From assembly GCA_024704765.1 (NCBI GenBank), contig JAKMXF010000003.1:62001-126000 (forward strand): 64,000 nt of DNA, written 5' to 3'. Origin of the DNA: Oopsacas minuta (taxonomy: Eukaryota > Animalia > Porifera). The translations under genes were made by a program, and so were the position numbers. The notes beneath the pieces were generated by a model. That model worked only from the letters and a program-made list of their open reading frames with translations. It was not told the DNA's origin and made no database searches. Below are positions 7,764 through 37,500 of the stretch, in pieces (position 1 is the first letter of the stretch; every line of letters starts with the position of its first letter).

Positions 7764-8927
7764 ATGGCCACCAAATACTCAGATGAAATTCCTACCAACC
7801 CTTTCGAACTAACGGAACAGATGATCCATTCCACCTTCGAGAAGGTTATTCGGATTGCGACAGAAAGAAAAGATCAGCTGCTTGTCCAGCTGTTCGATAT
7901 GAAGCAGGACTATCTAAGAAAGGAGAACACAAGAAAGAAACGAGTAGCAGACCTGGAGAAGATGATCAGACAATTCAATGAGACTTCTATTCAAGAGAAT
8001 GAAATAGTGAAGTTTCAAGGAGAACAGATGTTGCAAACAAAAGCTGAAATACAGAAATACGAAAAAGAAACGCCTGTCCCATTTCCTTCCTTCAATACTG
8101 AGGGTCTGGACGGTCTCCTAGAACAGCTGGAGAAGTTGGGGTCTATTCAGGCTACAGCTGTACCCTACAGAAACAAGACAGAGCCAATCAGAAGGATAGG
8201 AAAATATGGAAGAGAGAAAGGAGAGCTGAATTGCCCTATTGGACTAGCTCTAGATGGAGATAAGATCTATATAGCAGATACATTGAATAGTAGAATACAG
8301 ATCTTCTCTACAGAAGGTAAGTTCATTCAAGAATTTGGTAAAGGGGAGCTAGATAATCCATACGGTATAGCATTATATAAGGAATGGGTGTTTATAAGTG
8401 ATTGGGAACTTCATGCTATATTTAAATTCTCTAAAACAAATTACAAATTAATTAAAATTAAGACAGTTGTTAGTTACCCTCATGGTCTAACAACTGACAC
8501 AAATGGAGAAGTGTTAGTTGCAGATTCTAGTAATAATAGAATTGCAGTACTCAGCTCTGATTTAGAATATATTAGAGAAATAGGAAAAGACAAACTTATA
8601 AAACCGTGTGACGTCAAAATAAATAATAATAATATATTTGTAGCAGACAATAATGAGATTAATAATATACACATATTCTCTAAATCAGGTGATTTATTGA
8701 AAAGTTTCATAAAATTAGAAAATGGAAGAGGATATATTTCTCTGTGTTTTGATTTGTATAATAATATTATTATTAGCGATTATATGGGAAAATCAATTAA
8801 TATATTTACTAAAGATGGACAGCTGATACACAAAATTAAATGTAATTATCCTACAGGAATTATTGTTAATAATAACTTTGATATTATTTGTGCTAGTTTT
8901 AGTGATAATGTAATAAATATTTATTAA
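7764..8927 (+). CDS. Coiled-coil + NHL beta-propeller protein, array copy A (387 aa)
   Basis: TRIM-like coiled coil ([27 protein letters not shown]) followed by six NHL repeats (L.xP.G.a.d...i.vaD..N.RI..F). No RING, B-box or signal peptide. Intronless. Confidence 0.92.
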   Translation: MATKYSDEIPTNPFELTEQMIHSTFEKVIRIATERKDQLLVQLFDMKQDYLRKENTRKKRVADLEKMIRQFNETSIQENEIVKFQGEQMLQTKAEIQKYEKETPVPFPSFNTEGLDGLLEQLEKLGSIQATAVPYRNKTEPIRRIGKYGREKGELNCPIGLALDGDKIYIADTLNSRIQIFSTEGKFIQEFGKGELDNPYGIALYKEWVFISDWELHAIFKFSKTNYKLIKIKTVVSYPHGLTTDTNGEVLVADSSNNRIAVLSSDLEYIREIGKDKLIKPCDVKINNNNIFVADNNEINNIHIFSKSGDLLKSFIKLENGRGYISLCFDLYNNIIISDYMGKSINIFTKDGQLIHKIKCNYPTGIIVNNNFDIICASFSDNVINIY

Positions 8928-9042
8928 CTATATTGTTGTTGTTATTTACTTGTTTGTTTATTATTTATTAAATTATTATATTCACACTTGTCCTTTTCTA
9001 TAAATTAACATTCCTAACCGTTTCCACACGTGTACCCCTATA

Positions 9043-9340
9043 CTAATTATAACACATTATGTGTATCCTCCCATATTTGAGGTCCAGTGGACAACTTGTT
9101 GTCCTCCATGGTTCAGGTTGTAAACGGATGCCATATGGTATCAGAATTAAGATGGCTGTACTTAAGGAAGTAAGTTTGAATTCTAACCTCGTATGCGTCT
9201 TCAGAGGTGTCATAAAGTACTTCACTATCTGGAATTGGTTCCGGTTCCATTATCTGAACTGGAACTATAGGAGGAGGTGTTCGTATAGGTTCCTCAGGTT
9301 CTTGTGGTTGCATATCTGCCATTTTGGGAGGTGTTGCCAT
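9043..9340 (-). pseudogene. Pro/Glu-rich small ORF or orphan first exon (MADMQPQEPEEP...), frameshifted relative to its copy at 29697-29981
   Basis: Near-identical to 29697-29981. A 7-nt difference near 9120-9135 splits the reading frame here. A possible splice donor follows ...DAYE (GAG|GTTAG). Confidence 0.4.
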
Positions 9341-9626
9341 TTGAATTAATTTAGATGGAAGTGGTCTAGAAATACATATTGTTTGTTTGGTTGTGTGTTT
9401 GTTTGTTTGTTTGTTTGTTTGTTTGTTTGTTTGTTTGTTTGTTTGTTTGGTTGTTGTAGCAAAATATGAACACTCAAATTAGGTGTGAATTAGCTCATTC
9501 GAATATTATTCAATTCACCTCTCGGTCTAACTAATCACATCAAAAGTATTTTCTATTTTGTCGATTTTTTCTGATATTTTGAATTTGGTTAATTCTAATA
9601 ATTTTGTTAGCTTTATTTGAATCAAA

Positions 9627-11115: not shown

Positions 11116-11952
11116 TCATACATTGGCTTGTATTGGTGCTGGTACACAGGTTATCGTAGCATTTGGGTTCCAGGTAGTACTCTTGCAAATCAGACTGCCT
11201 CTTGTAGTCGGAGTTAAGCAAATAAAAGAAAATTTACTCTTGCAATAATCGCATGTCATCTCATTGCAACCACCATTATGTTCAAGTATAGTTGTGCAGT
11301 CAGGACAGGCTCTTATTCTAGGAACTTTGGCTGTTTTGCCTTTTTTATCTTTGAAATTAATCATTGGTGCAGACTTTAACTGTATGATCTTTTCTTTCTT
11401 GCAGTTTGAATTCCCACAGTTTTTGCCTTCAGTTGGGGAACTTTTCCATTCTCCAAGACAATACCAACAGAAGAGATAGGGTTTACTCATATTCTTTGTA
11501 CAGACAAGACAATTAACCTGAGGGCTGTCTTCGTTTTTACGCTGACAATAGCTTTTACAACGAATACACTGTTGTATATCTTGGCTGGCGCAGAAGTTAA
11601 CTGACAACGCTGCATTTAGAAATTGCTTCTCTTCATCATTAGGCAGTCCGAGTATTATGATGTCATCAATATCAACCATTTTTGTGCAGCTAGCACAACT
11701 AATTTCGTGTTTGAGTGTTTTTATTTGCTGCCAAGTATTGTCGAGTATATCAACTGGACACACGTAATGTCCACACTTCAGCTTGAGCCCTCCTTCATCT
11801 GAACATATACAGCATTCTCCATTAGGATGAGGGAATTTTACAGTTCTTTCATAATTCCTCTTCCCGATAAAGTAGTCTGCACCTACTCTAACCTGACTGA
11901 CTTCAATACCACGATTGTCAAATGCGGATTTAGAAGCAGCTAAACTTGACAT
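11116..11952 (-). CDS. Compact RBR (RING1-IBR-RING2) E3 ubiquitin ligase, single exon
   Basis: RING1-like CCIC...KCGHYVC...CASC; IBR QCIRC...VNCLVC...FCWYC; RING2 RACPDC..ILEHNGGCNEMTC with the catalytic Cys position retained. Confidence 0.85.
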   Translation of the reverse strand: MSSLAASKSAFDNRGIEVSQVRVGADYFIGKRNYERTVKFPHPNGECCICSDEGGLKLKCGHYVCPVDILDNTWQQIKTLKHEISCASCTKMVDIDDIIILGLPNDEEKQFLNAALSVNFCASQDIQQCIRCKSYCQRKNEDSPQVNCLVCTKNMSKPYLFCWYCLGEWKSSPTEGKNCGNSNCKKEKIIQLKSAPMINFKDKKGKTAKVPRIRACPDCTTILEHNGGCNEMTCDYCKSKFSFICLTPTTRGSLICKSTTWNPNATITCVPAPIQANV

Positions 11953-12846: not shown

Positions 12847-13650
12847 TATGTAATTACTCATTCTTCCCTTGTAAAAGTGTAAACATATATTAAACTGTCT
12901 CAATAAACTTCAAAATTATTCTAAACTAATGGTAAGTGTGATAAATCTAGTTTTTATTATCGAATATTCACAAAAATCAATCTCTATCATAATCCCTTCT
13001 TTAATTAACTAACCAATCCCTGGTCCAAATATTTTTAAGCGTGTCATTGCCTTAGTGTATAGAATGTCAAGGATAAGACTAAACAGACAAAAAGGTTTGA
13101 AAATCTACAAACATATTTGTTTACAATTCTTTACTTGTTATTATTTATAATCACCTCTCTATAAAGTTACAGAATATTTCAGTTATAACAAACATTCGTA
13201 TTACGATATAGAGGAAGAGTTATTAGAGAAGAGATTACCTCAACCTAATCCATACTGATTATACAGCATTCCAATGTCAATATGTGTTGTCATGATACTT
13301 GTCATGATTGTTTACTTGTTTACATATACTGTAGACTTTGTTTAGCCCAAAATTAATTTACCAACAAACTTATAAAATTCTTCCGAATTAGCTAATTATA
13401 GATTACACAAATAGCAACTAATTCTATACAAGGAATGTGGCTAGTTATAACTGGAACTAATTTACATATTGAACGCTATCTGACCTAACACATCCGTAAT
13501 TCTGTGAGACAATAGTCTCGTGGTAGAGTTAAAGGAAATGTGATTAGTTGTAACTTTCTATTTCATCACTTAACACCTGAATAATGAATGTATGAATTTG
13601 TATAAATACAATCTGTAAATGAGAATAATCATAAACACAACAACAAACAA

Positions 13651-14818
13651 ATGGCCACCAAATACTCAGATGAAATTCCTATTAACCATTTCGAACTAAC
13701 GGAACAGAAGATCCATTCCACCTTCGAGAAGGTTATTAGGATTGTGACAGAGAGGCGGGATCAGCTGCTTGTCCAGCTGTTCGATATGAAGCAGGACTAT
13801 CTAAGAAAGGAGAATACAAGAAAGAAACAATTCGCAGACCTGGAGAAGATGATCAGACAATTAATGGAAACTAGCATTCAACAGAATGAAGTAGTAAAGT
13901 TCCAAGAAGATCAAATAAAGAATTGGGGAAAAGAAACAAAAGAAATACGAAATAGAAACACCTATCCCAATCCCTTCCTTCAATAGTGAGGGTCTAGACT
14001 CTCTCCTAGAACAGCTGGAGAAGTTGGGGTCTATTCAGGATATAGCTGTACTATACAGAAACAAGATTGAGCCAATCAGAAGGATAGGAAAACCTGGAAG
14101 AGAGAAAGGAGAGCTGAATTACCCTGATGGACTAACTCTAGATGGAGATAAGATCTATATAGCAGATACAGGCAATAATAGAATACAGATCTTCTCTACA
14201 GAAGGTAAGTTCATTCAAGAATTTGGTAAAGGGGAGCTAAGTAATCCATCCAGTATAGCATTATATAAGGAATGGGTGTTTATAAGTGATAGGGGACTTA
14301 AAGCTATATTCAAATTCTCTAAAATAAATTACAAATTAATTAAGAGTGTTAAGGGAGTTGTTAGTTACCCTTGTGGTCTAACAACTGACACAAATGGAGA
14401 AGTGTTAGTTGCAGATTGTAATAATAATAGAATTGCAGTATTCAGCTCTGATTTAGAATATATTAGAGAAATAGGAAAAGACAAACTTATAAATCCGTGT
14501 GACGTCAAAATAAATAATAATAATATATTTGTAGCAGACAATAATGAGATTAATAATATACACATATTCTCTAAATCAGGTGATTTATTGAAAAGTTTCA
14601 TAAAATTAGAAAATGGAAGAGTATATATTTTTCTGTGTTTAGATTTGTGTAATAATATTATTATTAGCGATTATTGGGGAAATTCAATTAATATATTTAC
14701 TGAAGATGGACAGCTGATACACAAAATTACATGTAATGATCCTATAGGAATTATTGTTAATAATAACTTTGATATTATTTGTGCTAGTTTTAGTGATAAT
14801 GTAATAAATATATATTAA
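13651..14818 (+). pseudogene. Coiled-coil + NHL array copy B, one frameshift
   Basis: ORFs 13651-13986 and 14024-14818 are the two halves of one paralog. A 1-nt shift at or near the G run 13925-13928 restores ...KYEIETPIPIPSFNSEGLD. Confidence 0.85.
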
Positions 14819-16632: not shown

Positions 16633-17942
16633 CAGGGTGTCTAATAAGTTCTGTTATATATCAATTCCCCAATAATTTCAAATTTATCCATTGTAAAGCC
16701 ATGAAACTTTCTATTTTCTTAGGACTTATGTTCCTAATTACAAATTACAAATTTCATTCAATATAGCCTCCCTTTTTATGAATTACGGAAGTTAGTCTGC
16801 TCCGAAACTGATGGACAGCTTTTCGCAGCTCCTCCTGTGGGATTTTCTGCCATTCACTCAACAAACTAACTTTGAGGGACTCCAAACTCTTGTGAGATTT
16901 CGCACAGGCCCTGCTCTCCAAGTTTGCCCAAACAGAATAGTCGAGTGGGTTTAAATCTGGGCTTGATGGTGGCCATTCATCCTTACTTATGAAATCGATA
17001 TTTTGCTCACGGAACCAACTCTGGGATACTTTTGAAGCATGTGCAGGCGCAGAGTCTTGTTGGTAAGTCCAAGGATGGTTTTGAAAGAGCTTCTCACCCG
17101 CAGACGCAATTTCAGGCTCCAAAACCAGTTCTCTGTACGTCTGGGAGTCTATTTTCACTCCTTGGGGGACAAAAATCAGGTTTGTCCGTGAGTCTGCCGA
17201 CACTCCCGCCCATACCATCAGAGAAAGAGGCTTCTGGACTCTATCAATGTACTTGATGCTATCTGGGATATCCTGACTTCGAGAAGCAAGTATACGGTCG
17301 TTTTGACGATTGCTTGCCTCCTCAACGGTGAACAGCTTCTCATCTGAGAAGAGAATCTGATCTTCAGTCCCAGGAGCGAATCGGGCTTTTAGTTGTATGC
17401 ATCTTTCGAGTCGCTTACGACGTATGGAGTCGTTAAGATGGTGTACGTTTTCCGCTTATAGGACTTCATTCCTAGGTCCTCTACAACCAATTTCCGCATC
17501 GTTTCGTGATTGACACAGAATTCACGAGACATTTTTCGCATTGAACGCCGGGGATTTCTTAGGATTCGACATCTAACACTATTCTTCAGGGCTGGTGTGC
17601 GGGCGGATCTTGGACGACCAATTCGTTTCCTGTCGGACACGCTGCCAGTCTCTATTTATCGTTTTATTGTGCGATAGATCAACATGGGATTCACTTTATC
17701 ATTTTCTAGCCTTTTTAGAATTTCACTATTGCTAAACCCAGATTCGTGAAAAGTGACAATTTTTGAACGAATTTCTTCTAACATGATTTCTGGGAAATCA
17801 TCAACTTGAATGATATATTCTTGGTATAATTTGAAAGAGCGCCAAAAATGCTACAAGAAATTCTAGAAGATTACTTCATAAGTATATTAATAGCTACTGT
17901 CTAAGGCGCGAAAATGTATAACACAACTTATTAGACACCCTG
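16633..17942 (-). mobile_element. maT-family (DD37D) Tc1/mariner transposon, full length (1310 bp), transposase inactivated
   Basis: 18-bp TIRs CAGGGTGTCTAATAAGTT with TA duplication; the empty site is seen in paralogous units. Transposase 17784-16754 has FSDEK, QQDSAPAH and SPDLNPLDY with 37 residues between the 2nd and 3rd Asp. One premature TAA (about 17660) and one frameshift (about 17450). Confidence 0.93.
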
Positions 17943-18375
17943 TAATTCTGTTTTTTATACTCAAAATTGGAAAAATGAAATTCAGAGTAACTTCTTCCCA
18001 AAAAATTGTGTCTCAGAACGAATTATCACACCTTGAATACAAAATATCAAATATGGCAAATGAATAATTTCCATAAGAATAGTTAAGATATTCTAATTAT
18101 AGATTACACAAATTGGAACTAATAGCTAATACAGCATAGCAACTAATTCTATACAAGGAATGTGGCTAGTTATAACTGGAACTAATTTACATATTGAAAG
18201 CTATCTGACCTAACACATCCGTAATTCTGTGAGACAATAGTCTCGTGGTAGAGTTTAAGGAAATGTGATTAGTTGTAACTTTCTATTTCACCACTTAACA
18301 CCTGAATAATGAATGTATGAATTTGTATAAATACAGTCTGTAAATGAGAATAATCATAAACAGAACAACAAACAA

Positions 18376-19542
18376 ATGGCCACCCAATACTCAGAAGAAA
18401 TTCCTACCAACCATTTCGAACTAACGGAACAGCTGATCCATTCCACCTTCGAGAAGATTATTCGGATTGCGACAGAGAGGCGAGATCAGCTGCTTGTCCA
18501 GCTGTTCGATATGAAGCAGGACTATCTAAGAAAGGAGAATACAAGAAAGAAACAAGTAGCAGAACTGGAGAAGCTAATCCAACAAGTCATGGAAACTAGC
18601 ATTCAGCAAAATCCAATCCTCAAAGTCCAAGAGAGGCAACTAAACAACTTGGAAGAAGAAAAGATGAAATACAGTGAGCAAACCCCTATCCCCATCCCTT
18701 CCTTCAATAGTGAGGGTGTAGACTCTCTCCTAGAACAGCTGGAGAAGTTGGGGTCTATTCAGGCTATAGCTGGACAACAAGTCTACAGAAACAAGACTGA
18801 GCCAATCAGAAGGATAGGAAAACCTGGAAGAGAGAAAGGAGAGCTGTATGGCCCTCAAGGACTAGCTCTAGATGGAGATAAGATCTATATAGCAGATACA
18901 GACAATAGAATACAGATCTTCTCTACAGAAGGTAAGTTCATTCATGAATTTGGTAAAGGGGAGCTAAGTAATCCATACGGTATAGCATTATATAAGGAAT
19001 GGGTGTTTATAAGTGATTGGAGATTTAATTTTATATTTAAATTCTCTAAAACAAATTACAAATTAATTAAAAGTGTTAAGAGAGTTGTTATTTCCCCTCT
19101 TGGTCTAACAACTGACACAAATGGAGAAGTGTTAGTTGCAGATTATAATAATAATAGAATTGCAGTATTCAGCTCTGATTTAGAATATATTAGAGAAATA
19201 GGAAAAGACAAACTTATATATCCGCGTGACGTCAAAATAAATAATAATAATATATTTGTAGCAGACAATAATGAGATTAATAATATACACATATTCTCTA
19301 AATCAGGTGATTTATTGAAAAGTTTCATAAAATTAGAAAATAGAGCATTTATTTTTCTGTGTTTTGATTTGTGTAATAATATTATTATTAGCGATAATTG
19401 GGGAAATTCAATTAATATATTTACTGAAGATGGACAGCTGATACACAAAATTAAATGTAATTATCCTTCAGGAATTATTGTTAATAATAACTTTGATATT
19501 ATTTGTGCTAGTCTGAGTGATAAAGTAATAAATATATATTAA
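18376..19542 (+). CDS. Coiled-coil + NHL array copy C (388 aa)
   Basis: Intact ORF co-linear with copy A; variant coiled-coil segment; in-frame 1-codon deletions in two loops. Confidence 0.92.
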   Translation: MATQYSEEIPTNHFELTEQLIHSTFEKIIRIATERRDQLLVQLFDMKQDYLRKENTRKKQVAELEKLIQQVMETSIQQNPILKVQERQLNNLEEEKMKYSEQTPIPIPSFNSEGVDSLLEQLEKLGSIQAIAGQQVYRNKTEPIRRIGKPGREKGELYGPQGLALDGDKIYIADTDNRIQIFSTEGKFIHEFGKGELSNPYGIALYKEWVFISDWRFNFIFKFSKTNYKLIKSVKRVVISPLGLTTDTNGEVLVADYNNNRIAVFSSDLEYIREIGKDKLIYPRDVKINNNNIFVADNNEINNIHIFSKSGDLLKSFIKLENRAFIFLCFDLCNNIIISDNWGNSINIFTEDGQLIHKIKCNYPSGIIVNNNFDIICASLSDKVINIY

Positions 19543-20382
19543 TTATATTATTGTTATTATTGTTATTATTATTGTTATTTGTTTGTAATTAAATTCCCAT
19601 ATTTTACTATTTTTATTAATAATTTCCTTTCCAGTGTAAATATAATTTTTCAAAAATAGAATTAAATCATTGAATTATAAAAATTACGCACAAAGTTCTA
19701 ACTAATCAACTTCTAACTCGATTCCAACTCCGGGCTCGGATATCTCCAGTGGACTCCCTGCTGTCCTCCGATGGGCCACTAGGTGTGAGGGATTATTCCA
19801 TTTTTCTTTAATAGTAGTATATTATTAATAATCCGAGATAAAAATAGAATCCAGTTCAAGTTATAAGCGAATAACAAAGAGCACACACATTAGAAGATAT
19901 ACTGTTAGAAATTCAGTAAATAAAAGTAGCTTACATAATATGAATTGCTTAATTCTGAAATTCGTAAAAGTTAATGGGTCGCTCTATTAAAATGCTTTGT
20001 GTTCATTTGCGGGAGGTTGGATATAGGTATAAATTATAGATAATATCATGACAAATCACTCTAAAACTTGATATTACCTGGCCACGACTGGCAACAGTGA
20101 GTTTGGGGGGTAATTAGATCAAGGTATAATGTGTCCGGACACATTATGTGACGTCAAAATTAACTGAACCATGGAGAAAATATTCAAAGTGAAATATTTA
20201 GCTCTCATCAGAATTGAGAAGAATATGTTCTGAACTAATAATAGGTGAAAACTTAGAGCTGTCATTCCAATGAGTATTTTTGAATCGAGAATTATATGCC
20301 TATGTGTAAACAGAAAATAGAGTATGAATTTGTATAAATACAGTCTGTAAATAAGAATAATCATAAACAGAACAACAAACAA

Positions 20383-21555
20383 ATGGCCACCCAATACGCA
20401 CAAGAAATTCCTATGAACTCTTTCGAACAAGCGGAACACCTGATCCGTTCCACGTTCGACAAGTTAATCAGGATTGCGACAGAGAGGAGAGATCAGCTGC
20501 TTGTCCAGCTGTTCGATATGAAGCAGGACTATCTAAGAAAGGAGAATACAAGAAAGAAACAAGTAGCAGACCTGGAGAAGATGATCAGACAATTCAATGA
20601 GACTTCTATTCAAGAGAATGAAATAGTGAAGTTTCAAGAAGAACAGATGTTGCAAACAAGAGCTGAAATACAGAAATACGAAAAAGAAACGCCTGTCCCA
20701 TTTCCTTCCTTCAATACTGAGGGTCTGGACGGTCTCCTAGAACAGCTGGAGAAGTTGGGGTCTATTCAGGATATAGATGTACCCTACAGAAACAAGACTG
20801 AGCCAATCAGAAGGATAGGAAAACCTGGAAGTAAGAAAGGAGAGCTGAGTTACCCTCAAGGACTATCTCTAGATGGAGATAAGATCTATATAGTAGATGC
20901 ATACAATAGAAGAATACAGATCTTCTCTACAGAAGGTAAGTTCATTCAAGAATTTGGTAAAGGGGAGCTAGATACTCCATGGGGTATAGCATTATATAAG
21001 GAATGGGTGTTTATAAGTGATTATGGAAATTTAAATTCTGCTATATTTAAATTCTCTAAAATAAATTACAAATTAATTAAGAGAGTTAAGGGAGTTGTTG
21101 GTATCCCTCATGGCCTAACAACTGACACAAATGGAGAAGTGTTAGTTGCAGATTATTATAATAATAGAATTGCAGTATTCAGCTCTGATTTAGAATATAT
21201 TAGAGAAATAGGAAAAGACAAACTTATAAGACCGCGTGACGTCAAAATAAATAATAATAATATATTTGTAGCAGACAATAATGAGATTAATAATATACAC
21301 ATATTCTCTAAATCAGGTGATTTATTGAAAAGTTTCATAAAATTAGAAAATGGAGAAGAATTAATTTTTCTGTGTTTTGATTTGTATAATAATATTATTA
21401 TTAGCGATTTTGGGGGAAATTCAATTAATATATTTACTGAAGATGGACAGCTGATACACAAAATTAAATGTAATAGACCTACAGGAATTATTGTTAATAA
21501 TAACTTTGATATTATTTGTGCTAATCGGAGTGATAATGTAATAAATATATATTAA
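20383..21555 (+). CDS. Coiled-coil + NHL array copy D (390 aa)
   Basis: Intact ORF; 2-codon loop insertion (DYGNLNSA); upstream region differs from copies A, B, C, E and G. Confidence 0.92.
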   Translation: MATQYAQEIPMNSFEQAEHLIRSTFDKLIRIATERRDQLLVQLFDMKQDYLRKENTRKKQVADLEKMIRQFNETSIQENEIVKFQEEQMLQTRAEIQKYEKETPVPFPSFNTEGLDGLLEQLEKLGSIQDIDVPYRNKTEPIRRIGKPGSKKGELSYPQGLSLDGDKIYIVDAYNRRIQIFSTEGKFIQEFGKGELDTPWGIALYKEWVFISDYGNLNSAIFKFSKINYKLIKRVKGVVGIPHGLTTDTNGEVLVADYYNNRIAVFSSDLEYIREIGKDKLIRPRDVKINNNNIFVADNNEINNIHIFSKSGDLLKSFIKLENGEELIFLCFDLYNNIIISDFGGNSINIFTEDGQLIHKIKCNRPTGIIVNNNFDIICANRSDNVINIY

Positions 21556-24262: not shown

Positions 24263-27208
24263 CAGGCACGTAGCTAGAGCAAGACATTCAGGGGGGCAAG
24301 AAGTATTTCGGGAGGGCAATTGCAGGGATAAATATTTTTGAAAAGTTAATTACTTGTGTATAGCAAGTACGACCCAGTCTCCTTTTCTTACATGTATAGC
24401 CTTTTGAATTCATAAAGTACCAGATTACTAAGCTAGGGCGCATTAGATTAGTCTACATTATAGTAAGAGCATTTATTAAGATACTAAACTCAATTCAGGG
24501 ATACTATTTGACATTACAAAAGAAAGCGGCTGTGCTTCATCTGCTTAAAATGTCATCTTTCCGAGAAATAAACGAACGGAAAACTTCTACTTCACAATCT
24601 TTGATATCTATTGCATACAGTTCAGATAGTGTATTCAATTCCTGTTTGTTAAGAAAGTTTTGAGACCTTGGTAAGCAGCAATCAGCAGCCTTCATGATGC
24701 CTGATTGATCTGTACCAAAACGGGCATCCAATTCTGCTAAGATCTCGCGGACATTTTGGCGTAACAATATTTCAAGCTCTTCAAAGTTGGATGCGTTTGT
24801 GTGTCCAACAGAGCTATTTAGATATCCTTCTCTAAACCTTTCTGGAAGACGCCGTTGCCTGATTGTGTCTCTTACATCAAAATTTTCGATTTCATATTTA
24901 CTGGACAAATCTTTGGCATATTCAACAACCTTGTCAAAATAGAAATTGACCGACCTTTCCCTCAGATCGGCAAGTAATATCAAACAAGAAGAAACAGTTG
25001 CTGTCGACTTCTGAAAAGCTTTAGTGCAAAAATCAGAGTAATCATACAGCCTACCAAAGTACACTAAGATGGTCATAAATTTCTTTGTTTGTAGACTACC
25101 TAGTAAAGATTTAGCTGCTAAACTTGTGTCTGCATCATTATCATTTCCAAATATGCTTAAAGTATCAAGTATGCAATCAAACCGACGCAGAAACCTTTCC
25201 ACCTCCAAAGAACGGGAAGACCAACGAGTACTACATGAACGTGCAAGTTCAAGAGCTTGGACGTTGGGATAGCGCTCATCCTGGACGTCTATGAAAACTG
25301 CATGTCGCTTTGTTCCATTCATGAACGAATACGTCAAATGCAATATATCAAAGAAAGATTTCATCAGAGGATGTCGTTCAGCAGTTGCAGCTAATACTAA
25401 GTTAAGCCTATGTGAAGCACAATGAACATATGTGGCATTGCGATAACCTGCTCCTTTCATGCGGGCTTGGACACCACCGTGTATTCCTGACATAACACTA
25501 GCCCCGTCGTAACCCTGTCCTACACATTTCAGAGGATCGAGCTCAAAAGGCTTAAGTAGCTCTATCAGTTTTTCAGAGATGGTGCCCGCATCCATGTCCT
25601 TCAATTCAATAAAGCCAATAGCTCTATCTCGGACATTACCTTTATGGATATATCGCAAAGAACCACCTAACTCCTTCTTAGATGCATCTTTTACTTCGTC
25701 AGCTAGAATAGCATAACAAGACGCGATTTCTACTTCACTTTTAACATAGTCTAGAAGCACTGAAGCGAGTGATGTAAGCAAATCATTTTGGATATCTGGA
25801 CTTAGCATTTTTGCATTTCTTGGAAGACTTTCTATCCTCTTGGTCACATTGCTATCATATTTTCCTAAAAGTTCTAATATTTCAAGAAAGTTCCCTTTAT
25901 TAAGCGACTGATCTGATTCATCATCTCCTCGAAGAGGAACATCTTGTTTGGCACAAAAAGTAATAATGTCAAGAACAGTCATTAAATGTTTCCGATTGTC
26001 ATCTATGAATTTCTCATTTCGAAAATTGGGATCCAGTTGCTTATCTACCGTCCCTATTATTTGATGAATTGCCCAGATTTTCTGTGTTTCAACAGCTGCC
26101 ATATGACACACAGAACTATCGTGCTCCCTGCACTTGTCGCCAAGTTTCCTCCAGTCACAAAGTCCTTTTGTTGAAAACGTTGCTTCAGCTGTTGATCCTC
26201 CAAAAAGCCGACACGGTTGGCAAAATATAGCATCGAGTTCTTTGCTATACTCTATCCAGGAGAATTGGGCATACCAATGAGTACTAAAATGTCTACCGGC
26301 CTCATTTTTTAGGTAGATAATAGAAGGCTGCCTCGGTTTCTCACCATTTTTGGACAAATCATTTACAGTCACAATTGGTGATTGTATATGAGTCGTGTTT
26401 AAACGGAGTTGAAATAGTTGTACAAGAACCGGAAGTTAAAGGGGTCGAAACTTGAAGACTCGTAACAACAGGCTCTACCTCCTCATAATTTGAAGAGACG
26501 ACATGATCTTCGATTTCTATTCGATTTCTTTTAAAATATGCCTGAACTTTGCTTTGTTGTAGTCTTTTAGTCATCTAGAATTGTTAGAGATACGAGTCAC
26601 TGAACTGATTGAAGAACAGAAAATGTGAAAGATATGAGATATAGACTATAGAGTGACTTTATAACTTATAGAGAATATCCGAAATTCGCTTCACTCATGT
26701 GTAAATTTCAAAACAAGCTTTGAAAACTGAAACCCTAAGAGCATCACCAATCCTTCAATTACTTCAATGGACAGTCTAACTTCTGACAACAATTACTAGC
26801 GGTCTGTGGTAATTCAATTAAAATTATAGTAGAAATTCAGTGCCTGTCAAAATAGAACAAGTTTACTATCAATGAGCGTTACTTCCTGTCTAATATTAAA
26901 ACCATCATCGCAACGCGAGTTATTAATATCATAGTTTTGACGATGCAGTTGAAGTACATAGACTATTAATTACAGTGGAGTCCGCTTACTAGCAGCTCGG
27001 ATTTTGCAGAAATTTGGTTGCTAATAGGGCAACGAAATTAACATTATAATCCCGTTTGGGACCCGAAAGCTGATTGTTAATAGAGCAATATTACTAATAA
27101 GCTAACTACAGTGTATATAAAAACGAAAACTTCAAATTTATCTGGGGGGGGCGAGAGAAACTTTTGGGGAGGCAACCGCCCCCCTTGCCCCCCGTAGCTA
27201 CGTGCCTG
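24263..27208 (-). mobile_element. hAT DNA transposon (ZMYM1-like transposase), defective
   Basis: Perfect 14-bp TIRs CAGGCACGTAGCTA and subterminal GGGGGGCAAG. Transposase on minus (26574-26359 frameshifted into 26372-24537) has a TTF-type Zn finger (IFCQPC..F), ILADE, GQGYDGASVM, CASHRLNL and TRWSSR. It stops before the final catalytic Glu and dimerisation domain. No matching 8-bp TSD. Confidence 0.9.
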
Positions 27209-27790: not shown

Positions 27791-28289
27791 GTATATTTGA
27801 ATATTTGTTTATTTGTTTGCATGTTTATATATTCGTGTTTGTAAATATTTATTTATTTGTGTTTGTTTGTATATATTTATTCAATTTCTACTCATTCAAA
27901 TACGAAATCTGTGATTAATATTATTTCTGCCAATTATTGGTGGCTCAGCCACTTTGAATTGTTAAATCTTGGAAACTTTAATTCTGTTTTTTATACTCAA
28001 AATTGGAAAAATGAAATTCAGAGTAACTTCTTCCCAAAAAATTGTGTCTCAGAACGAATTATCACACCTCAAATACAAAATATCAAATATGGCAAATGAA
28101 TAATTTCCATAAGAATAGTTAAGATATTCTAATTATAGATTACACAAATAGGAACTAATAGCTAATACAGCATAGCAACTAATTCTATACAAGGAATGTG
28201 GCTAGTTATAACTGGAACTAATTTGCATGTAGAAAGCTATCTGACCTAACACATCCCTAATTCTGTGAGACAATAGTCTCGTGGTAGAG

Positions 28290-28368
28290 TTCAAGGAAAT
28301 GTGATTAGTTGTAAGTTTCTATTTCACCACTTAACACCTGAATAATGAATGTATGAATTTGTATAAAT
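28290..28368 (+). promoter_or_regulatory. Candidate NHL promoter module: GAS-like TTCAAGGAA, ISRE-like AGTTTCTATTTC, TATA box TATAAAT
   Basis: TTCAAGGAA 28290-28298, AGTTTCTATTTC 28314-28325, TATAAAT 28362-28368, ATG 28412. The same module (with variants) precedes copies A, B, C and G. Function is inferred from the STAT (TTCN3GAA) and IRF (TTTCNNTTTC) consensus sequences. Confidence 0.45.
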
Positions 28369-28411
28369 ACAGTCTGTAAATGAGAATAATCATAAACAGA
28401 ACAACAAACAA

Positions 28412-29578
28412 ATGGCCACCAAATACTCAGATGAAATTCCTACTGACTCTTTCGAACTAACGGAACAGATGATTCATTCCACCTTCGAGAAGATAATTCG
28501 GATCGCGATAGAAAGGAAAGATCAGCTGCTTGTCCAGCTGTTCGATATGAAGCAGGACTATCTAAGAAAGGAGAATACAAGAAAGAAACGAGTAGCAGAC
28601 CTGGAGAAGATGATCCAACAATTCAATGAGACTTCTATTCAAGAGAATGAAATAGTGAAGTTTCAAGGAGAACAGATGTTGCAAACAAGAGCTGAAATAC
28701 AGAAATACGAAAAAGAAACGCCTGTCCCATTTCCTTCCTTCAATACTGAGGGTCTGGACGGTCTCCTAGAACAGCTGGAGAAGTTGGGGTCTATTCAGGA
28801 TATAGCTGTACCCTACAGAAACAAGACAGAGCCAATCAGAAGGATAGGAAAATATGGAAGTAAGAAAGGAGAGCTGTTTCGCCCTTATGGACTAGCTCTA
28901 GATGGAGATAAGATCTATATAGCAGATACATTCAATGATAGAATACAGATCTTCTCTACAGAAGGTAAGTTCATTCAAGAATTTGGTAAAGTGGAGCTAT
29001 ATAATCCATCCGGTATAGCATTATATAAGGAATGGGTGTTTATAAGTAATTTGGAATTTAATTTTATATTAAAATTCTCTAAAACAAATTACAAATTAAT
29101 TAAGAGTGTTAAGGGAGTTGTTAGTTTCCCTCTTGGTCTAACAACTGACACAAATGGAGAAGTGTTAGTTGCAGATTGTGATAATAATAGAATTGCAGTA
29201 TTCAGCTCTGATTTAGAATATATTAGAGAAATAGGAAAAGACAAACTTATAAAACCGCGTGACGTCAAAATAAATAATAATAATATATTTGTAGCAGACA
29301 ATAATAAGATTAATAATATACACATATTCTCTAAATCAGGTGATTTATTGAAAAGTTTCATAAAATTAGAAAATGTAAAAGAATTCATTTTTCTGTGTTT
29401 AGATTTGTATAATAATATTATTATTAGCGATTATTTCGGAAAATCAATTAATATATTTACTGAAGATGGACAGCTGATACACAAAATTAAATGTATTTAT
29501 CCTACAGGAATTATTGTTAATAATAACTTTGATATTATTTGTGCTAGTTTTAGAGATAAAGTAATAAATATATATTAA
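28412..29578 (+). CDS. Coiled-coil + NHL array copy E (388 aa)
   Basis: Intact ORF co-linear with the other copies. Confidence 0.92.
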   Translation: MATKYSDEIPTDSFELTEQMIHSTFEKIIRIAIERKDQLLVQLFDMKQDYLRKENTRKKRVADLEKMIQQFNETSIQENEIVKFQGEQMLQTRAEIQKYEKETPVPFPSFNTEGLDGLLEQLEKLGSIQDIAVPYRNKTEPIRRIGKYGSKKGELFRPYGLALDGDKIYIADTFNDRIQIFSTEGKFIQEFGKVELYNPSGIALYKEWVFISNLEFNFILKFSKTNYKLIKSVKGVVSFPLGLTTDTNGEVLVADCDNNRIAVFSSDLEYIREIGKDKLIKPRDVKINNNNIFVADNNKINNIHIFSKSGDLLKSFIKLENVKEFIFLCLDLYNNIIISDYFGKSINIFTEDGQLIHKIKCIYPTGIIVNNNFDIICASFRDKVINIY

Positions 29579-30599: not shown

Positions 30600-31770
30600 C
30601 GATTGCCAGTCAACTCGTACCTATTTCAACTCGTACTTTTTATTTTGGTCAACTCGTCCCCATTTTCATAGTCAAGTCGTCCCATTTTTTTGGACAACTC
30701 TTAGGCGTATCTATTCTATAATAGATACAACTTATTCCTAAATTTGCTATTAATATTAAACAACAAGAATGTTTTATACAACTTATGATAAACAATAATA
30801 TATTTTTTATAGAATATCCGTGGAGTAAATATGTGTTGAGCTATTCTGTGGGTCCAGCTAGATGGGCACATCTATCAAGCAGTCTTTTGGAATCTCGTAG
30901 CGTCATCGTTGTTAATCGATATTCTTCCCATGCATTGCATATACTGCTTTGAGTCCAACGAAAACGGCGTTTTTGGCGTCTAGTTAACTTTACTCCATGC
31001 ACAAGTCGGACCTGTAGGTCGGCCATCTTTGCCTATATGTAAAATATTAGAATTAAAAATATGGTTTATTAATTATTCAAGTTATTAAAACCAGAAATTA
31101 ACTTTAGAGTTTAGGGAAGTGTTGCCTAAGGTCCTTAACTAGAGTTGATTATTAGTTAAGTTTGTATACATTAGTTGCTTTTCTTACATCTCTTGATAGT
31201 AGTTCTACCAGTAAATAAATTGCGGACTGTTCCTTGTTGCAGCTCTATTTAACTTGGAGTGCCAACCTTCCACATCATTATTGGTTCTTATTAGTTGATT
31301 ATAAACACTCCAAGAATAGGGAGTCCAAATACTATTCGAAATCCATCTAGTATAGACATAGTTTGTTAATTCAACTAATGCATCAGTTCCTGCCTTTTGA
31401 CGCAACTTCCTGAACATTTCCACTATATGTTCTGCTACATCTGAGAGCCTTCAGTGCCAATTCAGGCAGAGGTTTTCTAGACTCCTTTGCAAGGTCAAAT
31501 GCAAAAACGATTCGCTCTTCTCCAATAATACGTTTCTTTGTGGGACTGGGGGGTTGAGTAGGAGTGATTGCCAAGTAGATAGATCGTTACACTTACTGAA
31601 AGCATCACGTTCAGACTTCAATTCGCTGAATCTTCTCCGAATTGAGGAGAATTCGCCATTTGAAAGATCATATATCTGGATGAAGAAATCGACTGCTGTT
31701 CTGATTGAAGGTTGAGAGAGAGAAGATAATCAAAAGCTTCCTGGTTACTCAGTTAGAATTTAAAATATTT
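30600..31770 (-). mobile_element. Mutator-like (MULE) element remnant
   Basis: Terminal repeats of GTCAACTCGTAC(C)-type motifs at about 30608-30690. Minus-strand fragments W..NSIWTP.SWSVYNQLIRTNNDVEGWHSKLN (MULE catalytic Glu region) and LQVRLV..VKLTRRQ...W.EY (C-terminus). Absent at the equivalent position after copy D. Confidence 0.7.
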
Positions 31771-32243
31771 GCTAGAAATTTACTAAATAAAAGTAGTAAA
31801 ATGTGAATTGCTTATATTCTGAAATTCGTAAAAGTTAGTGGTTCGCTCTCTTAAAGATGCTGAGTGTTCATTTGCGGGAGGCTGGATGTAGGTCTAAATT
31901 ATAGATAATATCATGACAAATCATCCTAAAACTTGATATTACCTGGCCACGACTGGCCACAGTGAGTTTGAGGGGTAATTAGATCAGGGTATAATGTGTC
32001 CGGACACATTATGTGACGTCAAAATTAACTGAACCATGGAGAAAATATTCAAAGTGAAATATTTAGCTCTCATCAGAATTGAGAAGAGAATGTTCTGAAC
32101 TAATAATAGGTGAAAACTTAGAGCTTTCTAATGAGTATTTTTGGATCAAGAATTATATGCCTATGTGTAAACATAACATAGAGTATGAACTTGTATAAAT
32201 ACAGTCAGTATATTAGAATAATCATAAACAGAACAACAAACAA

Positions 32244-33407
32244 ATGGCTACCAAATACTCAGATGAAATTCCTACCAACCACTTCGAACTAACGGAACAG
32301 ATGATCCATTCCACCTTCGAGAAGATTATTAGGATTGCGAAAGAGAGGAGAGATCAGCTGCTTGTACAGCTGTTCGATATCAAGCAGTATTATCTAAGAA
32401 AGGAGAATACAAGAAAGAAACGAGTAGCAGACCTGGAGAAGATAATCAGACAATTAAATGAGACTTCTATTCAAGAGAATGAAATAGTAAAGTTTCAAGA
32501 AGAACAGATGTTGCAAACAAAAGCTGAAATACAGAAATACGATAAAGAAACGCCTGTCCCATTTCCTTCCTTCTGCCTTGAGGGTCTAGACTCTCTCCTA
32601 GAACAGCTGGAGAAGTTGGGGTCTATTCAGGAGATAGCTGGACTATACAAAAACAAGACAGAGCCAATCAGAAGGATAGGAAAACCTGGCAGTGAGATAG
32701 GGGAGCTGAATTACCCTTATGGACTAGCTCTAGATGGAGATAAGATCTATATAGCAGATGCATACAATAAAAGAATACAGATCTTCTCTACAGAAGGTAA
32801 GTTCATTCATGAATTTGGTAAAGAGGAGCTAGATATTCCATCCGGTATAGCATTATATAAGGAATGGGTGTTTGTAAGTGATTGGGGATTTAATTTTATA
32901 TTAAAATTCTCTAAAACAAATTACAAATTAATTAAGAGTGTTAAGGGAGTTGTTAGTTACCCTTATGGTCTAACAACTGACACAAATGGAGAAGTGTTAG
33001 TTGCAGATTTGGGTAATAATAGAATTGCAGTATTCAGCTCTGATTTAGAATATATTAGAGAAATAGGAAAAGACAAACTTATAAGACCGAATGACGTCAA
33101 AATAAATAATAATAATATATTTGTAGCAGACAAGAATAAGATTAATAATATACACATATTCTCTAAATCAGGTGATTTATTGAAAAGTTACATAAAATTG
33201 GAAAATGGAGAATATATTTTTCTGTGTTTTGATTTGTATAATAATATTATAATTACCGATTATTGGGGAAATTCAATTAATATATTTACTAAAGATGGAC
33301 AGCTGATACACAAAATTGAATGTAATAATCCTAGAGGAATTATTGTTAATAATAACTTTGATATTATTTGTGCTAGTTATAGTGATAGTGTAATAAATAT
33401 ATATTAA
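32244..33407 (+). CDS. Coiled-coil + NHL array copy F (387 aa)
   Basis: Intact ORF; shares its upstream region type with copy D. Confidence 0.92.
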   Translation: MATKYSDEIPTNHFELTEQMIHSTFEKIIRIAKERRDQLLVQLFDIKQYYLRKENTRKKRVADLEKIIRQLNETSIQENEIVKFQEEQMLQTKAEIQKYDKETPVPFPSFCLEGLDSLLEQLEKLGSIQEIAGLYKNKTEPIRRIGKPGSEIGELNYPYGLALDGDKIYIADAYNKRIQIFSTEGKFIHEFGKEELDIPSGIALYKEWVFVSDWGFNFILKFSKTNYKLIKSVKGVVSYPYGLTTDTNGEVLVADLGNNRIAVFSSDLEYIREIGKDKLIRPNDVKINNNNIFVADKNKINNIHIFSKSGDLLKSYIKLENGEYIFLCFDLYNNIIITDYWGNSINIFTKDGQLIHKIECNNPRGIIVNNNFDIICASYSDSVINIY

Positions 33408-33785
33408 TTATATTATTATTGTTATTAATGTTGTTATTTGTTTGTAATTAAATTCTCATATTTTACTATTTTTATTAATAATTTCCTTTCCAATGTAAAT
33501 ATAATTTTTCAAAAAATAGAATTAAATCATTAAATAATAAAAATTACGCACAAAGTTCTAACTAATCAACTTCTAACTCGATTCCAACTCCGGGCTCGGA
33601 TATCTCCGGTGGACTCCCTGCTGTCCTCCGATGGGCCACTAGGTGTGAGGGATTATTGCATTTTTCTTTAATAGTAGTATATTATTAATAATCTGAGATA
33701 AAAATAGAATCCAGTTCAAGTTATAGGCGAATAACAAAGAGCACACACATTAGAAGATATATTGTTAAAATAATATACACAGGTG

Positions 33786-34513
33786 TTAAAAAGATTCTCT
33801 TAAGAATTGGGTGAGTAGGAGCTGTTTAGCACTAGGACGATTGGATGGATCTCTAAATGAAATATTAATAGTTATACAGATGTACAAACAAATTCAGAGT
33901 GTAATCTAAGATATTGCTTATATCTTAGAAAGGTGTTCCCAGACTAATCACATTCCACATACACACAAAATTCAAATTTCTAGCCCTTATCATTCCCCAA
34001 ATAATATTCTCTTAAAATTCATTCATGAACAATATTTTTGTCCCCCGCGGGGGTTCACAATAGGTGACCATTACTGTAGCCTAATTATCAAACTAACTGT
34101 TGCAGACATCTGTTAATAAATGCCTTCACTCCATCTGATAATGTATCAGGAAGTTGTGGTAGATCATATCCCATTCCTATCCTGAATAGAGCTGCTTCTT
34201 GTGAGATATCTTTAAAGGCCCTACAAACACTCTTGAAGCTAAAATATGTGATGGAGGGAAGGGAGGTATTCTCATGTGCATAATTACAGAATCCATTCTA
34301 TTACAATCATTTAAGAGTAAATACCAAGGTGGCTTCCCTGTTGCCATCTCAAAAACTGTACATCCAATGCTCCTATAGAAATATACAAGATAATGGCAAC
34401 AAAATATAAATGCAAATACAGTCAATGCCCCCGGGAAGTCAAAATCGGTTCGAGATAGCGAATATTCGAGTTAACAGGTTTTTGAGATAGTGGATGTTGA
34501 GTGTATATAAAGT

Positions 34514-34554
<41 letters not shown>

Positions 34555-37500
34555 GACACACCATATATCAGCCTTTTCATTATACTCTTCTTCTCGTATA
34601 ACCTCAGGAGCCATCCAATATACAGTTCCTTTCATAGATTTGCATAACATTGTGAACTTATCGTAGGTAAGCTAGAAGTATAATTATTGAATAATAAGCG
34701 AATAATTATGGCTGCTATATGTGTCTTACCGTAGCCGATTCATCTCTGAAAGCTCTTGCACACCCAAAGTCTATCAGTTTTATGCATCCACTCGGCTCTA
34801 CCATTATGTTATCTCCCTTCACGTCTCTAACATATACGAATAGTTAATTAGTGTCCATCGTATAGGGGAGGGGGAGCATTTCTAGCGTCCGTTGGTGTTC
34901 GTATTAAAGATATTCTGGTATACATATGTACTTACCTGTGTATTACATTCTTTGAATGTAAATACTTAACTCCACTGACAATCTGACGAGTGTAATTCCT
35001 TAGAAAAGATTCTTCAAATGGTCCGTATCTAATTACAGAATTAATTCAATTATCTATAAACTATTCTATTTTTAGAACAGTAGACTCAGATTAATTAGGG
35101 TCATATCTGGATCAGACCATTTTGACCTGATTAACCGGTGTCTACTGTAGTAGATGAATAGATAATTGTATTTCTGATTTTCTTACGTTTTCAGCAGTCG
35201 AGCTACAGATCCTCCAGCTACGAACTCCATGAATATATTCACTATCATGTTGTCAAGACACGAGCCGAGATATTTGACTATATTTCCATGAGAAAGTCTC
35301 TTAAGAACATCCACTTCTGCTTTGACGAGTTCGTATTGCTAAAAATAGAAATATTGCATACAACAATTCCCTAAAGATTATTGCATCTATTATGATTAAT
35401 CATATTTTGACACCTTTGATAATGTCCTATGAAATTGTATGAACTCAATATTTCCTATTTTTCACGCATAAATATCAAGGAAGAATCTACAAGAAATGAT
35501 TAGAATCATAAATTGGAACTGATAGCTAATACGGCATAGCAACTAATTCTATACAAGGAATGTGGCTAGTTATAACTGGAACTAATTTACATATTGAAAG
35601 TCATCTGACCTAACACATCCGTAATTCTGTGAGACAATAGTCTCGTGGTAGAGTTCAAGGAAATGTGATTAGTTGTAACTTTCTATTTCATCACTTAACA
35701 CCTGAATAATGAATGTATGAATTTGTATAAATACAGTCTGTAAATGAGAATAATCATAAACAGAACAACAAACAAATGGCCACCCAATACTCAGATGAAA
35801 TTCCTACCAACCCTTTCGAACTAACGGAACAGATGATCCATTCCACCTTCGAGAAGATTATTCGGATTGCGACAGAAAGGAGAGATCAGCTGCTTGTCCA
35901 TCTGTTCGATATGAAGCAGGACTATCTAAGAAAGGAGAACACAAGAAAGAAACAATTAGCAGACCTGGAGAAGATGATCCAACAATTCAATGAGACTTCT
36001 ATTCAAGAGAATGAAATAGTGAAGTTTCAAGAAGAACAGATGTTGCAAACAAGAGCTAAAATACAGAAATACGAAAAAGAAACGCCTGTCCCATTTCCTT
36101 CCTTCAATAGTGAGGGTGTAGACTCTCTCCTAGAACAGCTGGAGAAGTTGGGGTCTATTCAGGAGATAGCTGGACTATACAGAAACAAGACAGAGCCAAT
36201 GAGAAGGATAGGAAAACCTGGAAGAGAGAAAGGGGAGCTGAATTACCCTTATGGACTAGCTCTAGATGGAGATAAGATCTATATAGCAGATACAGGCAAT
36301 AATAGAATACAGATCTTCTCTACAGAAGGTAAGTTCATTCAAGAATTTGGTAAAGAGCAGCTAAATACCCCACACGGTATAGCATTATATAAGGAATGGA
36401 TGTTTATAAGTGATGGGGAACTTAATGCTGTATTAAAATTCTCTAAAACAAATTACAAATTAATTAAGAGTGTTAAGGAAGGTGTTAGTTTCCCTCATGG
36501 TCTAACAACTGACACGAATGGAGAAGTGTTAGTTGCAGATTCTAATAATAATAGAATTGCAGTATTCAGCTCTGATTTAGAATATATTAGAGAAATAGGA
36601 AAAGACAAACTTAGATTTCCGCGTGACGTCAAAATAAATAATAATAATATATTTGTATTAGACAATAATGAGATTAATAATATACACATATTCTCTAAAT
36701 CAGGTGATTTATTGAAAAGTTTCTTAGAATTAGAGGATGGAAGAGGTTTAATTTATATGTGTTTAGATTTGTGTAATAATATTATAATTAGCGATTGTTC
36801 GGGAAATTCAATTAATATATTTACTAAAGATGGACAGCTGATACACAAAATTATATGTAATATACCCACAGGAATTATTATTAATAATAACTTTGATATT
36901 ATTTGTGCTAATTGTAGTGATAATGTAATAAATATATATTAATTATATTGTTGTTATTTACATATTTGTTTGTAATTAAATTCTCATATTTCTCTTTTTA
37001 TATTAATAATTTTGGTACAACGAATCTAGACTTAAATAATATTTCCCAAAATTACAAATTGACTGACAGATGAAATAACTATTGTGTATTTTGGTAGTTA
37101 GCTAACTGATCATGACATAACATTTCAAGGACCAAATCAACGGTCCTAATCTGGGGGCTATCGACCCCTTGGTGGTCCACGGGTAACAAACAATAATATA
37201 TCTAATATCAATACTCAATTTCCATGTATGGTTATACTCGTATATCTCTGTTTTATACAACCAACCTTCATTGCTTTCTCTTTATCATAATAGTTAAGTT
37301 CAATCTGCTTCACTGCTATTATCATTCCTTTATCAAGAGTTAATCCTCTCACAACCTAATCAACATATTATCATAAAGGTTCTGTAAATATTTTACCCCT
37401 TATGCTGTGATCTCGACTAAGCAGAGATATTAATAATATCGCTAGACTTATTGCCGGTTATAAGAACACCCTTGGGAGTAGCAATGGATGGTCTATGAGT

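Follow-up and report, generated by a model that had tools for sequence, protein, structure and literature searches.

A tandem array of coiled-coil and NHL-propeller genes

The window analysed here, a 64,000-nucleotide (nt) stretch of contig JAKMXF010000003.1 from the glass sponge Oopsacas minuta, is AT-rich eukaryotic DNA (GC about 0.32-0.41). The source assembly comprises 365 contigs and 61.46 Mb; the published genome of this sponge is described as 365 scaffolds with 36% G+C (PMC10280926). Between positions 7764 and 36942 the window carries seven intronless genes, A to G, all on the forward strand and 387-390 codons each, whose products are predicted to contain a coiled coil followed by an NHL propeller. 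The original prediction made from this sequence was that short-tract gene conversion reassorts the binding loops of these proteins combinatorially, drawing on the array or on other family members. The copies are listed below with a diverged relative, H, used as outgroup; flank and coiled-coil types are those distinguished by clustering in a later section.

7764..8927, forward strand: copy A, intact open reading frame (ORF), 387 amino acids; 5′ flank alpha, coiled-coil type I, 3′ flank a
13651..14818, forward strand: copy B, frameshifted, ORFs 13651-13986 and 14024-14818; 3′ flank type b
18376..19542, forward strand: copy C, intact, 388 amino acids; 5′ flank alpha, coiled-coil type III, 3′ flank b
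20383..21555, forward strand: copy D, intact, 390 amino acids; 5′ flank beta, coiled-coil type I, 3′ flank c
28412..29578, forward strand: copy E, intact ORF, 388 amino acids; 5′ flank type alpha
32244..33407, forward strand: copy F, intact, 387 amino acids; 5′ flank beta (as D), 3′ flank b (as B and C)
35776..36942, forward strand: copy G, intact, 388 amino acids; 5′ flank alpha, coiled-coil type I, 3′ flank d
51671..52864, forward strand: copy H, diverged relative beyond the array, 397 amino acids, 47% identical

Copies A and E belong to a common 2.5-kb duplication unit. The frame of copy B is broken by one extra base at position 13938, in an A-rich run; its coiled coil, assigned to type II by eye, has a motif common to family members L006, L010 and L012 and differs from those of A and C by 23-25% over nt 186-350. 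The spacers between copies are broken up by transposon-derived pieces, namely a 611-amino acid ORF on the reverse strand (24537-26574) with a DUF4371 domain (E 5e-23), taken to be of the hAT-transposase type, and a reverse-strand remnant (16754-17640) of Tc1/mariner-like appearance, with weak matches to a DDE_3 endonuclease domain (E 5e-5, under the Pfam cut-off) and to a helix-turn-helix domain.

Pfam searches of copies A, D and H and an AlphaFold2 (AF2) model of copy G assign to the encoded protein an N-terminal coiled coil and a six-blade NHL propeller. The NHL family (PF01436) matches copy A at E 7.6e-17, and matches at E 7e-18 to 2e-22 were also obtained. In the model, whose mean predicted local distance difference test (pLDDT) score is 83.7, a disordered decapeptide is followed by helices at residues 13-74, 82-100 and 112-124 (pLDDT 60-80) and then by 24 strands forming the six blades of a propeller scored above 90. 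Foldseek retrieves the NHL domains of Thin, TRIM2 and TRIM71 (E 1e-22 to 1e-18; target-normalised template modelling score 0.78-0.83), the best sequence matches in the PDB are Thin (6d69, E 3e-34) and TRIM71, TRIM3 and TRIM2 (1.6e-29 to 6e-27), and family members are named TRIM71-like or TRIM2-like by NCBI. The coiled coil and six-blade propeller are what these proteins have in common with the TRIM-NHL proteins of class VII (TRIM2, TRIM3, TRIM32/Thin, TRIM71/LIN-41, Brat and Mei-P26). Unlike the latter, the sponge genes are intronless and without RING and B-box: a RING finger gave no Pfam match at E ≤ 0.1 in A, D or H, and neither did a B-box, the first 140 residues containing no cysteine or histidine cluster. 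As both domains are missing, the sponge proteins are not full members of the TRIM-NHL family; in structure they are derivatives of it, minus RING and B-box. Between copies A and B, on the reverse strand (11116-11952), lies an intronless ORF of 278 amino acids with an IBR domain (Pfam E 2e-6), an RBR-type ubiquitin-ligase-like gene within an array of RING-less TRIM-like genes.

Canonical TRIM-NHL genes are reportedly conserved and low-copy (they are said to make up group 1 of Sardiello et al. 2008). The sponge family, by contrast, has at least 55 close copies and 108 protein-level matches in the 61-Mb genome, and its predicted binding face is hypervariable. At the DNA level 67 candidate NHL domains match the array, and the 40 that were scored are about 86-93% identical. 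The codon alignment used below held 23 full-length members (6 from the window and 17 from other contigs) and was later extended to 55, so that 55 of at least 67 candidate close family members were sampled.

Rapid codon turnover on one propeller face

Variation within the propeller is confined to particular loops. The 36 most variable codons all fall in the D-to-A or B-to-C loops or in the adjoining strand ends, with none in the A-to-B and C-to-D loops. In the topology of beta-propellers, D-to-A and B-to-C loops make up one face, and it is the corresponding face that binds RNA in Brat and LIN-41. Each hypervariable site occurs in 7-12 codon states. A second family, compared at the protein level, has its variability at corresponding sites (r=0.79), with 15 positions in common between sets of 22 and 18. 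It accounts for more than 90 of the 120 matches listed (P0031-P0120), comes from an ENA assembly with contigs of up to 1.5 Mb that may be of another hexactinellid, and comprises proteins of 390-391 amino acids, 54-58% identical to those described here.

The gene copies are young. The noncoding flanks of A and E diverge by 2.4% (31/1305) and their coding sequences by 5.2%; over the long noncoding flanks divergence is 1.9-3.8% for A and E and 3.0-6.3% for other pairs, below the 5.2-9.5% found in coding sequence. In the NHL framework, synonymous divergence (dS) is 0.040, and nonsynonymous divergence (dN) at hypervariable codons, a class set by amino-acid entropy, is 0.63. Taken whole and unpartitioned, the NHL half of the window copies yields a dN/dS of 2.17 (bootstrap 95% confidence interval 1.35-3.81); measured against their own dS, the hypervariable codons yield 4.8-6.7. 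With A/E and the flanks as yardstick, the turnover of loop codons is at least about 18-fold the neutral rate.

The closest pairs in the family illustrate this turnover. Pairs with as few as 3-7 framework differences (0.5-1.3% of about 555 nt) already differ at 66-82% of their hypervariable codons, compared with 78% in the most distant pairs, so that loop divergence is saturated even in the closest pairs. Across the 25 closest pairs, hypervariable codons differ at 36.5% of nucleotides, against 4 silent differences in 1081 within two codons of a hypervariable codon. Where two copies agree in the amino acid encoded at a hypervariable site, the codon itself is also identical 97% of the time, which indicates that there is no local excess of silent change.

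An old family could in principle give the same picture, if frequent conversion homogenised the framework and proximal flanks while selection shielded old, divergent loop codons. Such concerted evolution would account for a synonymous divergence of 0.04 in the NHL half against 0.19 in the coiled coil (0.045 against 0.11 when C is left out), for the near-identity of frameworks across contigs (C and L013 show 3 differences), for the star-like NHL tree, whose internal branches amount to 10% of its length, and for the fact that every copy within the species has its nearest relatives there, the family of the second species being only 57% identical. It is harder to reconcile with the silent sites near, or sandwiched between, hypervariable codons, which are identical but for the 4 in 1081: with such sites 3-6 nt off, tract ends would need to fall inside the loops every time. 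Furthermore, the long noncoding flanks are about as similar as the framework, as expected for young duplicates, and the 97% codon agreement is not what old, diverged codons would give. We consider concerted evolution unlikely as the source of the loop pattern.

A mutagenic process programmed for or targeted to the loop codons, in the germline or the soma and acting beyond selection, is a different way of reaching so steep a contrast with silent sites 3-6 nt away (nominally about 100-fold). The private loops found in every copy (see below) could be read in this sense, and so could the substitution spectrum, in which transversions outnumber transitions by 127:72 at hypervariable codons, against 118:113 in the framework. 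Against such a process, sites with A, T, G or C as majority base all vary, so that no base specificity is apparent, and third positions and silent change at hypervariable codons are not raised in step with nonsynonymous change, as seen from the dN/dS of 4.8-6.7 and the codon agreement above; untargeted local hypermutation would have elevated third-position and silent change. All copies, moreover, are fixed germline loci in distinct contexts. The lack of base specificity, together with the lack of a matched silent rise, makes selection the better fit, and we infer that selection rather than local hypermutation drives the loop changes; mutagenesis of this kind seems highly improbable. Adenine mutagenesis of the type carried out by diversity-generating retroelements was considered and rejected, majority bases being A14 T11 G6 C5 at position 1 and A18 G9 T7 C2 at position 2, with all substitution types represented. 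No reverse transcriptase was evident in the ORF lists of the window, although no search dedicated to one was made. A directed process in the broader sense, site-targeted and either mutagenic or templated, operating in the germline or in the syncytial soma, would turn the NHL propellers into a generated and not merely inherited repertoire; we regard this as very unlikely.

Probable recurrence of states in the loops and exchange elsewhere in the gene

The case for shuffling of loops was built in part on two markers 6 nt apart, in a loop preceding blade 1, that occur in all four combinations. These are found as follows, all in the forward orientation.

8202..8216 (copy A; columns 149, 151 and 152 in the codon alignment of the family): TAT with AGAGAG
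14090 (copy B), 18820 (copy C) and 36214 (copy G): CCT with AGAGAG
20821 (copy D): CCT with AGTAAG
28850 (copy E): TAT with AGTAAG
32682 (copy F): a fifth variant, CCT GGC AGT GAG

The combinations are real: AAAYMTGGAAGWRAG occurs six times in the window and never in shuffles. Equally, the loop motifs said to be shared incongruently are all present in the translations (DAYN in D and F, DTGNN in B and G, NYPY in F and G, PQG in C and D, FNFI in C, E and F, DYWG in B and F, DKVI in C and E), and no single duplication tree fits the seven copies, in which all four gametes are present at 2114 of 4186 pairs of biallelic informative sites. What did not hold is the treatment of AGAGAG/AGTAAG as a unit. 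The variation resides in two adjacent codons, AGA/AGT and GAG/AAG, at neighbouring nucleotides, and all four of their combinations exist in the family (AGT GAG in F, L006 and others; AGA AAG in L013 and L025). Likewise, other copies carry CAT, CTT and TGT, which connect TAT with CCT through single steps, and the shared motifs are mostly made of the commonest state at each position.

Exchange and recurrent mutation make different predictions as to how incompatibility changes with distance. The pairwise homoplasy index (PHI), the four-gamete test with its minimum number of recombination events (Rmin) and an autocorrelation of co-identity were re-implemented in scripts for this analysis. Among site pairs of the NHL half, the incompatible fraction stays level at 0.56-0.60 over all distances, being about 56% already for sites 1-2 nt apart and remaining in that range through more than 500 nt. 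In the coiled-coil half it is 0.12 for sites 1-2 nt apart and has climbed to 0.44 by 250-500 nt, and the mean score goes from 0.12 to 0.49. The PHI test, suggested with the original prediction as a check, is significant for the whole gene in the array (p=0.003) and not for the half of the gene that contains the loops (p=0.13). Family-wide it gives z=-11 for the whole gene, z=-7.4 for the coiled coil and z=-1.9 (p=0.028) for the NHL half, and is not significant at non-hypervariable NHL sites; restricted to third positions or to non-hypervariable sites in the 6 intact copies of the window, it yields no significant result, with too few (22-25) informative sites. The Hudson-Kaplan Rmin of the array is 43 in 1.17 kb, including three "events" between adjacent nucleotides; read as recombination this figure is not credible, the infinite-sites assumption being violated.

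Alignments simulated with AliSim on the maximum-likelihood tree, with site-specific rates and zero recombination, have an incompatibility of 0.552+/-0.024 in the NHL half (observed, 0.594) and 0.688+/-0.033 at hypervariable sites (observed, 0.708). By this test, which has little power, recurrent mutation suffices to account for the incompatibility observed there, the incongruence being of the size that repeated substitution yields.

The loops themselves are almost all private. The more complex ones exist as 44, 44, 46, 51, 49, 42 and 41 distinct haplotypes among the 37-53 members with data for each loop (for example 44/53, 46/53, 51/53, 49/53 and 41/42), and therefore donors are absent: most complex loops of A to G have no identical copy anywhere in the genome, among the 55 of at least 67 candidates sampled. 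Sharing of whole loops, scored on 23 copies and again on 55 as a safeguard against unsampled donors, is only 1.1-5 times the product of independent codon frequencies. Nor are neighbouring hypervariable codons inherited together. Once pair and site effects are removed, their co-identity is positive only up to 6 nt (z 3.9) and vanishes beyond (z -1.2 at 7-15 nt, z 0.15 at 16-60 nt); co-identity in the coiled coil is strong up to 60 nt (z 8.3, 9.2 and 4.8). The second family shows the same contrast, with independence between hypervariable positions.

Germline short-tract conversion, moving loop variants among copies of the array or family from a shared pool, has some observations in its favour besides the marker combinations, the incongruent motifs and the four gametes at half of the informative pairs. 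Other parts of the gene are indeed exchanged between paralogues; some non-sister copies have a few whole loops in common (L008 with D, and with E); adjacent whole loops are jointly shared slightly more often than expected (5 observed, 1.3 expected); and identical frameworks would conceal the ends of tracts. The flat incompatibility, no lower at 1-2 nt than at 500 nt, the private loops and the co-inheritance limited to 6 nt contradict it, as do the loop sharing of only 1.1-5 times the independent expectation and the PHI result for the NHL half. In addition, shuffling is unable to make the 7-12 codon states seen per site. We give combinatorial reassortment of the loops by conversion only a slim chance.

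Independence of hypervariable codons at 7-60 nt, well within one k-mer or read, also bears on the quality of the sequence. The assembly was a hybrid one (SPAdes, k up to 99), combining Illumina reads of one adult with PacBio reads of separate tissue and polished with Pilon (PMC10280926). Mis-phasing of near-identical paralogues might generate mosaics that are not biological: framework stretches identical in all copies exceed 99 nt, so that phasing across them could be wrong, many family members are located on very short contigs, and the single-base frameshift of copy B in its A-rich run could be an error. On the other hand, six of the seven copies have intact frames, each copy is anchored in unique intergenic DNA, and the same positions and statistics recur in the second family, from a different assembly, which argues against an assembly artefact. 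There is very little likelihood, in our estimate, that the pattern is due to assembly or polishing.

Outside the loops, on the scale of the coiled coil and flanks, there is no doubt that paralogues recombine. In approximately unbiased (AU) tests the NHL tree fails on the coiled-coil data (delta log-likelihood 471, p 5e-46), and the coiled-coil tree fails both on the NHL data (134, p 1e-51) and on the NHL framework alone (p 4e-4). Clustering distinguishes two types of 5′ flank, four of coiled-coil segment and nine of 3′ flank, which differ by tens of nucleotides or are non-homologous and are combined in incompatible ways (scores 1, 4 and 2). The features concerned include the following.

18556..18735, forward strand: foreign tract in copy C, about 180 nt of coiled coil with 62 mismatches to A and 4 to L013
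7524..7763, forward strand: 5′ flank type alpha of copy A; also 13411-13650 (B), 18136-18375 (C), 28172-28411 (E) and 35536-35775 (G)
19903..20322, forward strand: 5′ flank type beta of copy D; also 31770-32183 (F), and L011 and L023 on another contig

L013 lies on another contig, and the rest of C resembles its neighbours in the window (mismatch profile in 60-nt windows); a clade of C and L013 has 100% support, in the coiled-coil tree only. The unit of copy F is chimeric, with a 5′ flank as in D and a 3′ flank as in B and C. The first 120 nt or so of copy D stem from a lineage other than that of A and E (21 mismatches), and the following stretch, nt 120-360, has 4 mismatches. Type alpha, about 240 nt upstream of the start codon, holds a TATAAATA box near -45 and is 3.0% divergent among window copies and 6.0% across the family; type beta (D, F, L011, L023) is unrelated to it beyond -60. 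Judging from these sequences, the putative promoter region exists as two exchangeable types. The original prediction was right, then, in having paralogues recombine or convert, those on other contigs included; it is as units supplied by donors that the loops do not qualify. Within the propeller, L008 shares loops 3 and 6 (blades 2-3) with D and loops 10 and 11 (blades 5-6) with E, which suggests that occasional exchanges of a few hundred nucleotides take place there too.

The coiled-coil half, roughly the first 420 nt of each gene, has a synonymous divergence of 0.19 in the array (0.11 without C), against 0.02-0.04 in noncoding flanks and 0.04 in the propeller framework. Old, discrete coiled-coil types I-IV seem to be kept and passed among otherwise young copies; oligomerisation specificity is one possible cause of their upkeep. 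Paralogue recombination of this sort is real, and ordinary for a tandem family.

The explanation that we find probable is that the array consists of young tandem duplicates whose private loops arise by diversifying selection on one face of the propeller, with recombination between paralogues proceeding separately and on a larger scale. The copies, at a neutral divergence of about 2-6%, would be recent members of a lineage-expanded family encoding cytosolic, RING-less TRIM-like proteins with a coiled coil and a six-blade NHL propeller. About 36 codons on one face would be replaced independently and repeatedly, at no less than some 18 times the neutral pace, under diversifying selection, each copy thereby gaining its private set of loops. 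With 7-12 states per site and multiple hits, the same state would recur in unrelated copies and produce four-gamete patterns and incongruent "sharing", even at adjacent nucleotides. Separately, unequal crossing-over or ectopic gene conversion would reshuffle the coiled-coil segment and the 5′ and 3′ flanks, in pieces that range in length from tens to hundreds of nucleotides.

Several points weigh against this explanation. A turnover at least 18 times the neutral rate lies at the outer limit of the known effects of selection alone, and the nominal 100-fold contrast in the closest pairs rests on only 3-7 framework differences. Estimates by the Nei-Gojobori method (NG86) are rough at multiply hit codons, and the partitioned dN is circular, as entropy had defined the class; the whole-domain omega and the comparison with flanks are not. 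The simulation has low power, the observed values lying within 2 standard deviations in all partitions, coiled coil included (z 1.6), and the star-like NHL tree could itself stem from very frequent recombination. Finally, synonymous divergence is 2.5-5 times lower in the NHL half than in the coiled coil, which leaves room for homogenising conversion; likely, there has been some homogenisation of the propeller, or else import of divergent coiled-coil segments.

Neighbouring genes and comparison with known systems

Copy H is flanked by two mutually similar ORFs, at 50397-51026 on the reverse strand and at 53292-53774 on the forward strand, which by eye we take to be cupin-type cysteine dioxygenases. 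On either side of the array (1-7135 and 37000-64000) many of the genes consist of one long ORF each, which fits the compact, intron-poor genome described for the sponge; among them, judged by eye, are presumably a calpain, a ubiquitin-specific protease, a kinase and a DHCR24-type reductase.

Lineage-specific tandem expansion of TRIM-type genes is a feature that the sponge family has in common with the rapidly evolving TRIM-B30.2 families, such as primate TRIM5alpha/TRIM22 and fish finTRIM. The expansion of these families and the selection acting on them are treated in PMC3137616 and PMC3356915.

In TRIM5alpha/TRIM22 and finTRIM, positive selection centres on loops at the surface of the recognition domain, which is C-terminal. 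In the sponge, omega likewise exceeds 1 over the NHL domain (whole-domain dN/dS 2.2) and hypervariable codons are confined to surface loops. The host differs, the variable module is an NHL propeller and not B30.2/SPRY, and the RING effector is missing. An antiviral or immune role for the sponge family is only an analogy drawn from these cases. More generally, the variable face would be in keeping with a recognition function, for example that of an intracellular sensor of varied ligands.

Systems that diversify by conversion (chicken immunoglobulin pseudo-V genes, micro-conversion in the major histocompatibility complex, cassettes for antigenic variation) resemble the sponge family in combining a conserved framework with variable patches and in exchanging sequence between paralogues. 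The sponge family differs from them in having no donor cassettes, its loops being private, in lacking tract-wise co-inheritance beyond 6 nt, and in exchanging its coiled coil and flanks instead of its variable loops.

Literature searches returned no paper on hypervariable NHL families, on expansion of TRIM71-like genes or on an expanded NHL family in Oopsacas (most papers retrieved with "NHL" concern lymphoma), and NHL, TRIM and "propeller" gave no result in targeted searches of the paper describing the genome of this sponge.

TRIM-NHL genes are usually conserved, and to our knowledge NHL propellers have not been described as hypervariable recognition scaffolds. The unusual core of the present finding is a large RING-less family with coiled coil and NHL propeller in which every copy has private loops on one face; compared with silent sites only a few nucleotides distant, these loops change faster by a factor of at least about 18, and nominally of up to about 100. 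The analysis separates true exchange between paralogues from homoplasy at hypervariable codons, two processes that look alike in raw sequence, and shows that arguments from four gametes break down at sites that have undergone multiple hits. Should a recognition role be confirmed for the proteins, they would represent a new kind of scaffold on which a repertoire is inherited, in an animal lineage that is among the earliest to branch off, and would also offer a clean system for learning how fast selection alone can diversify a binding surface.

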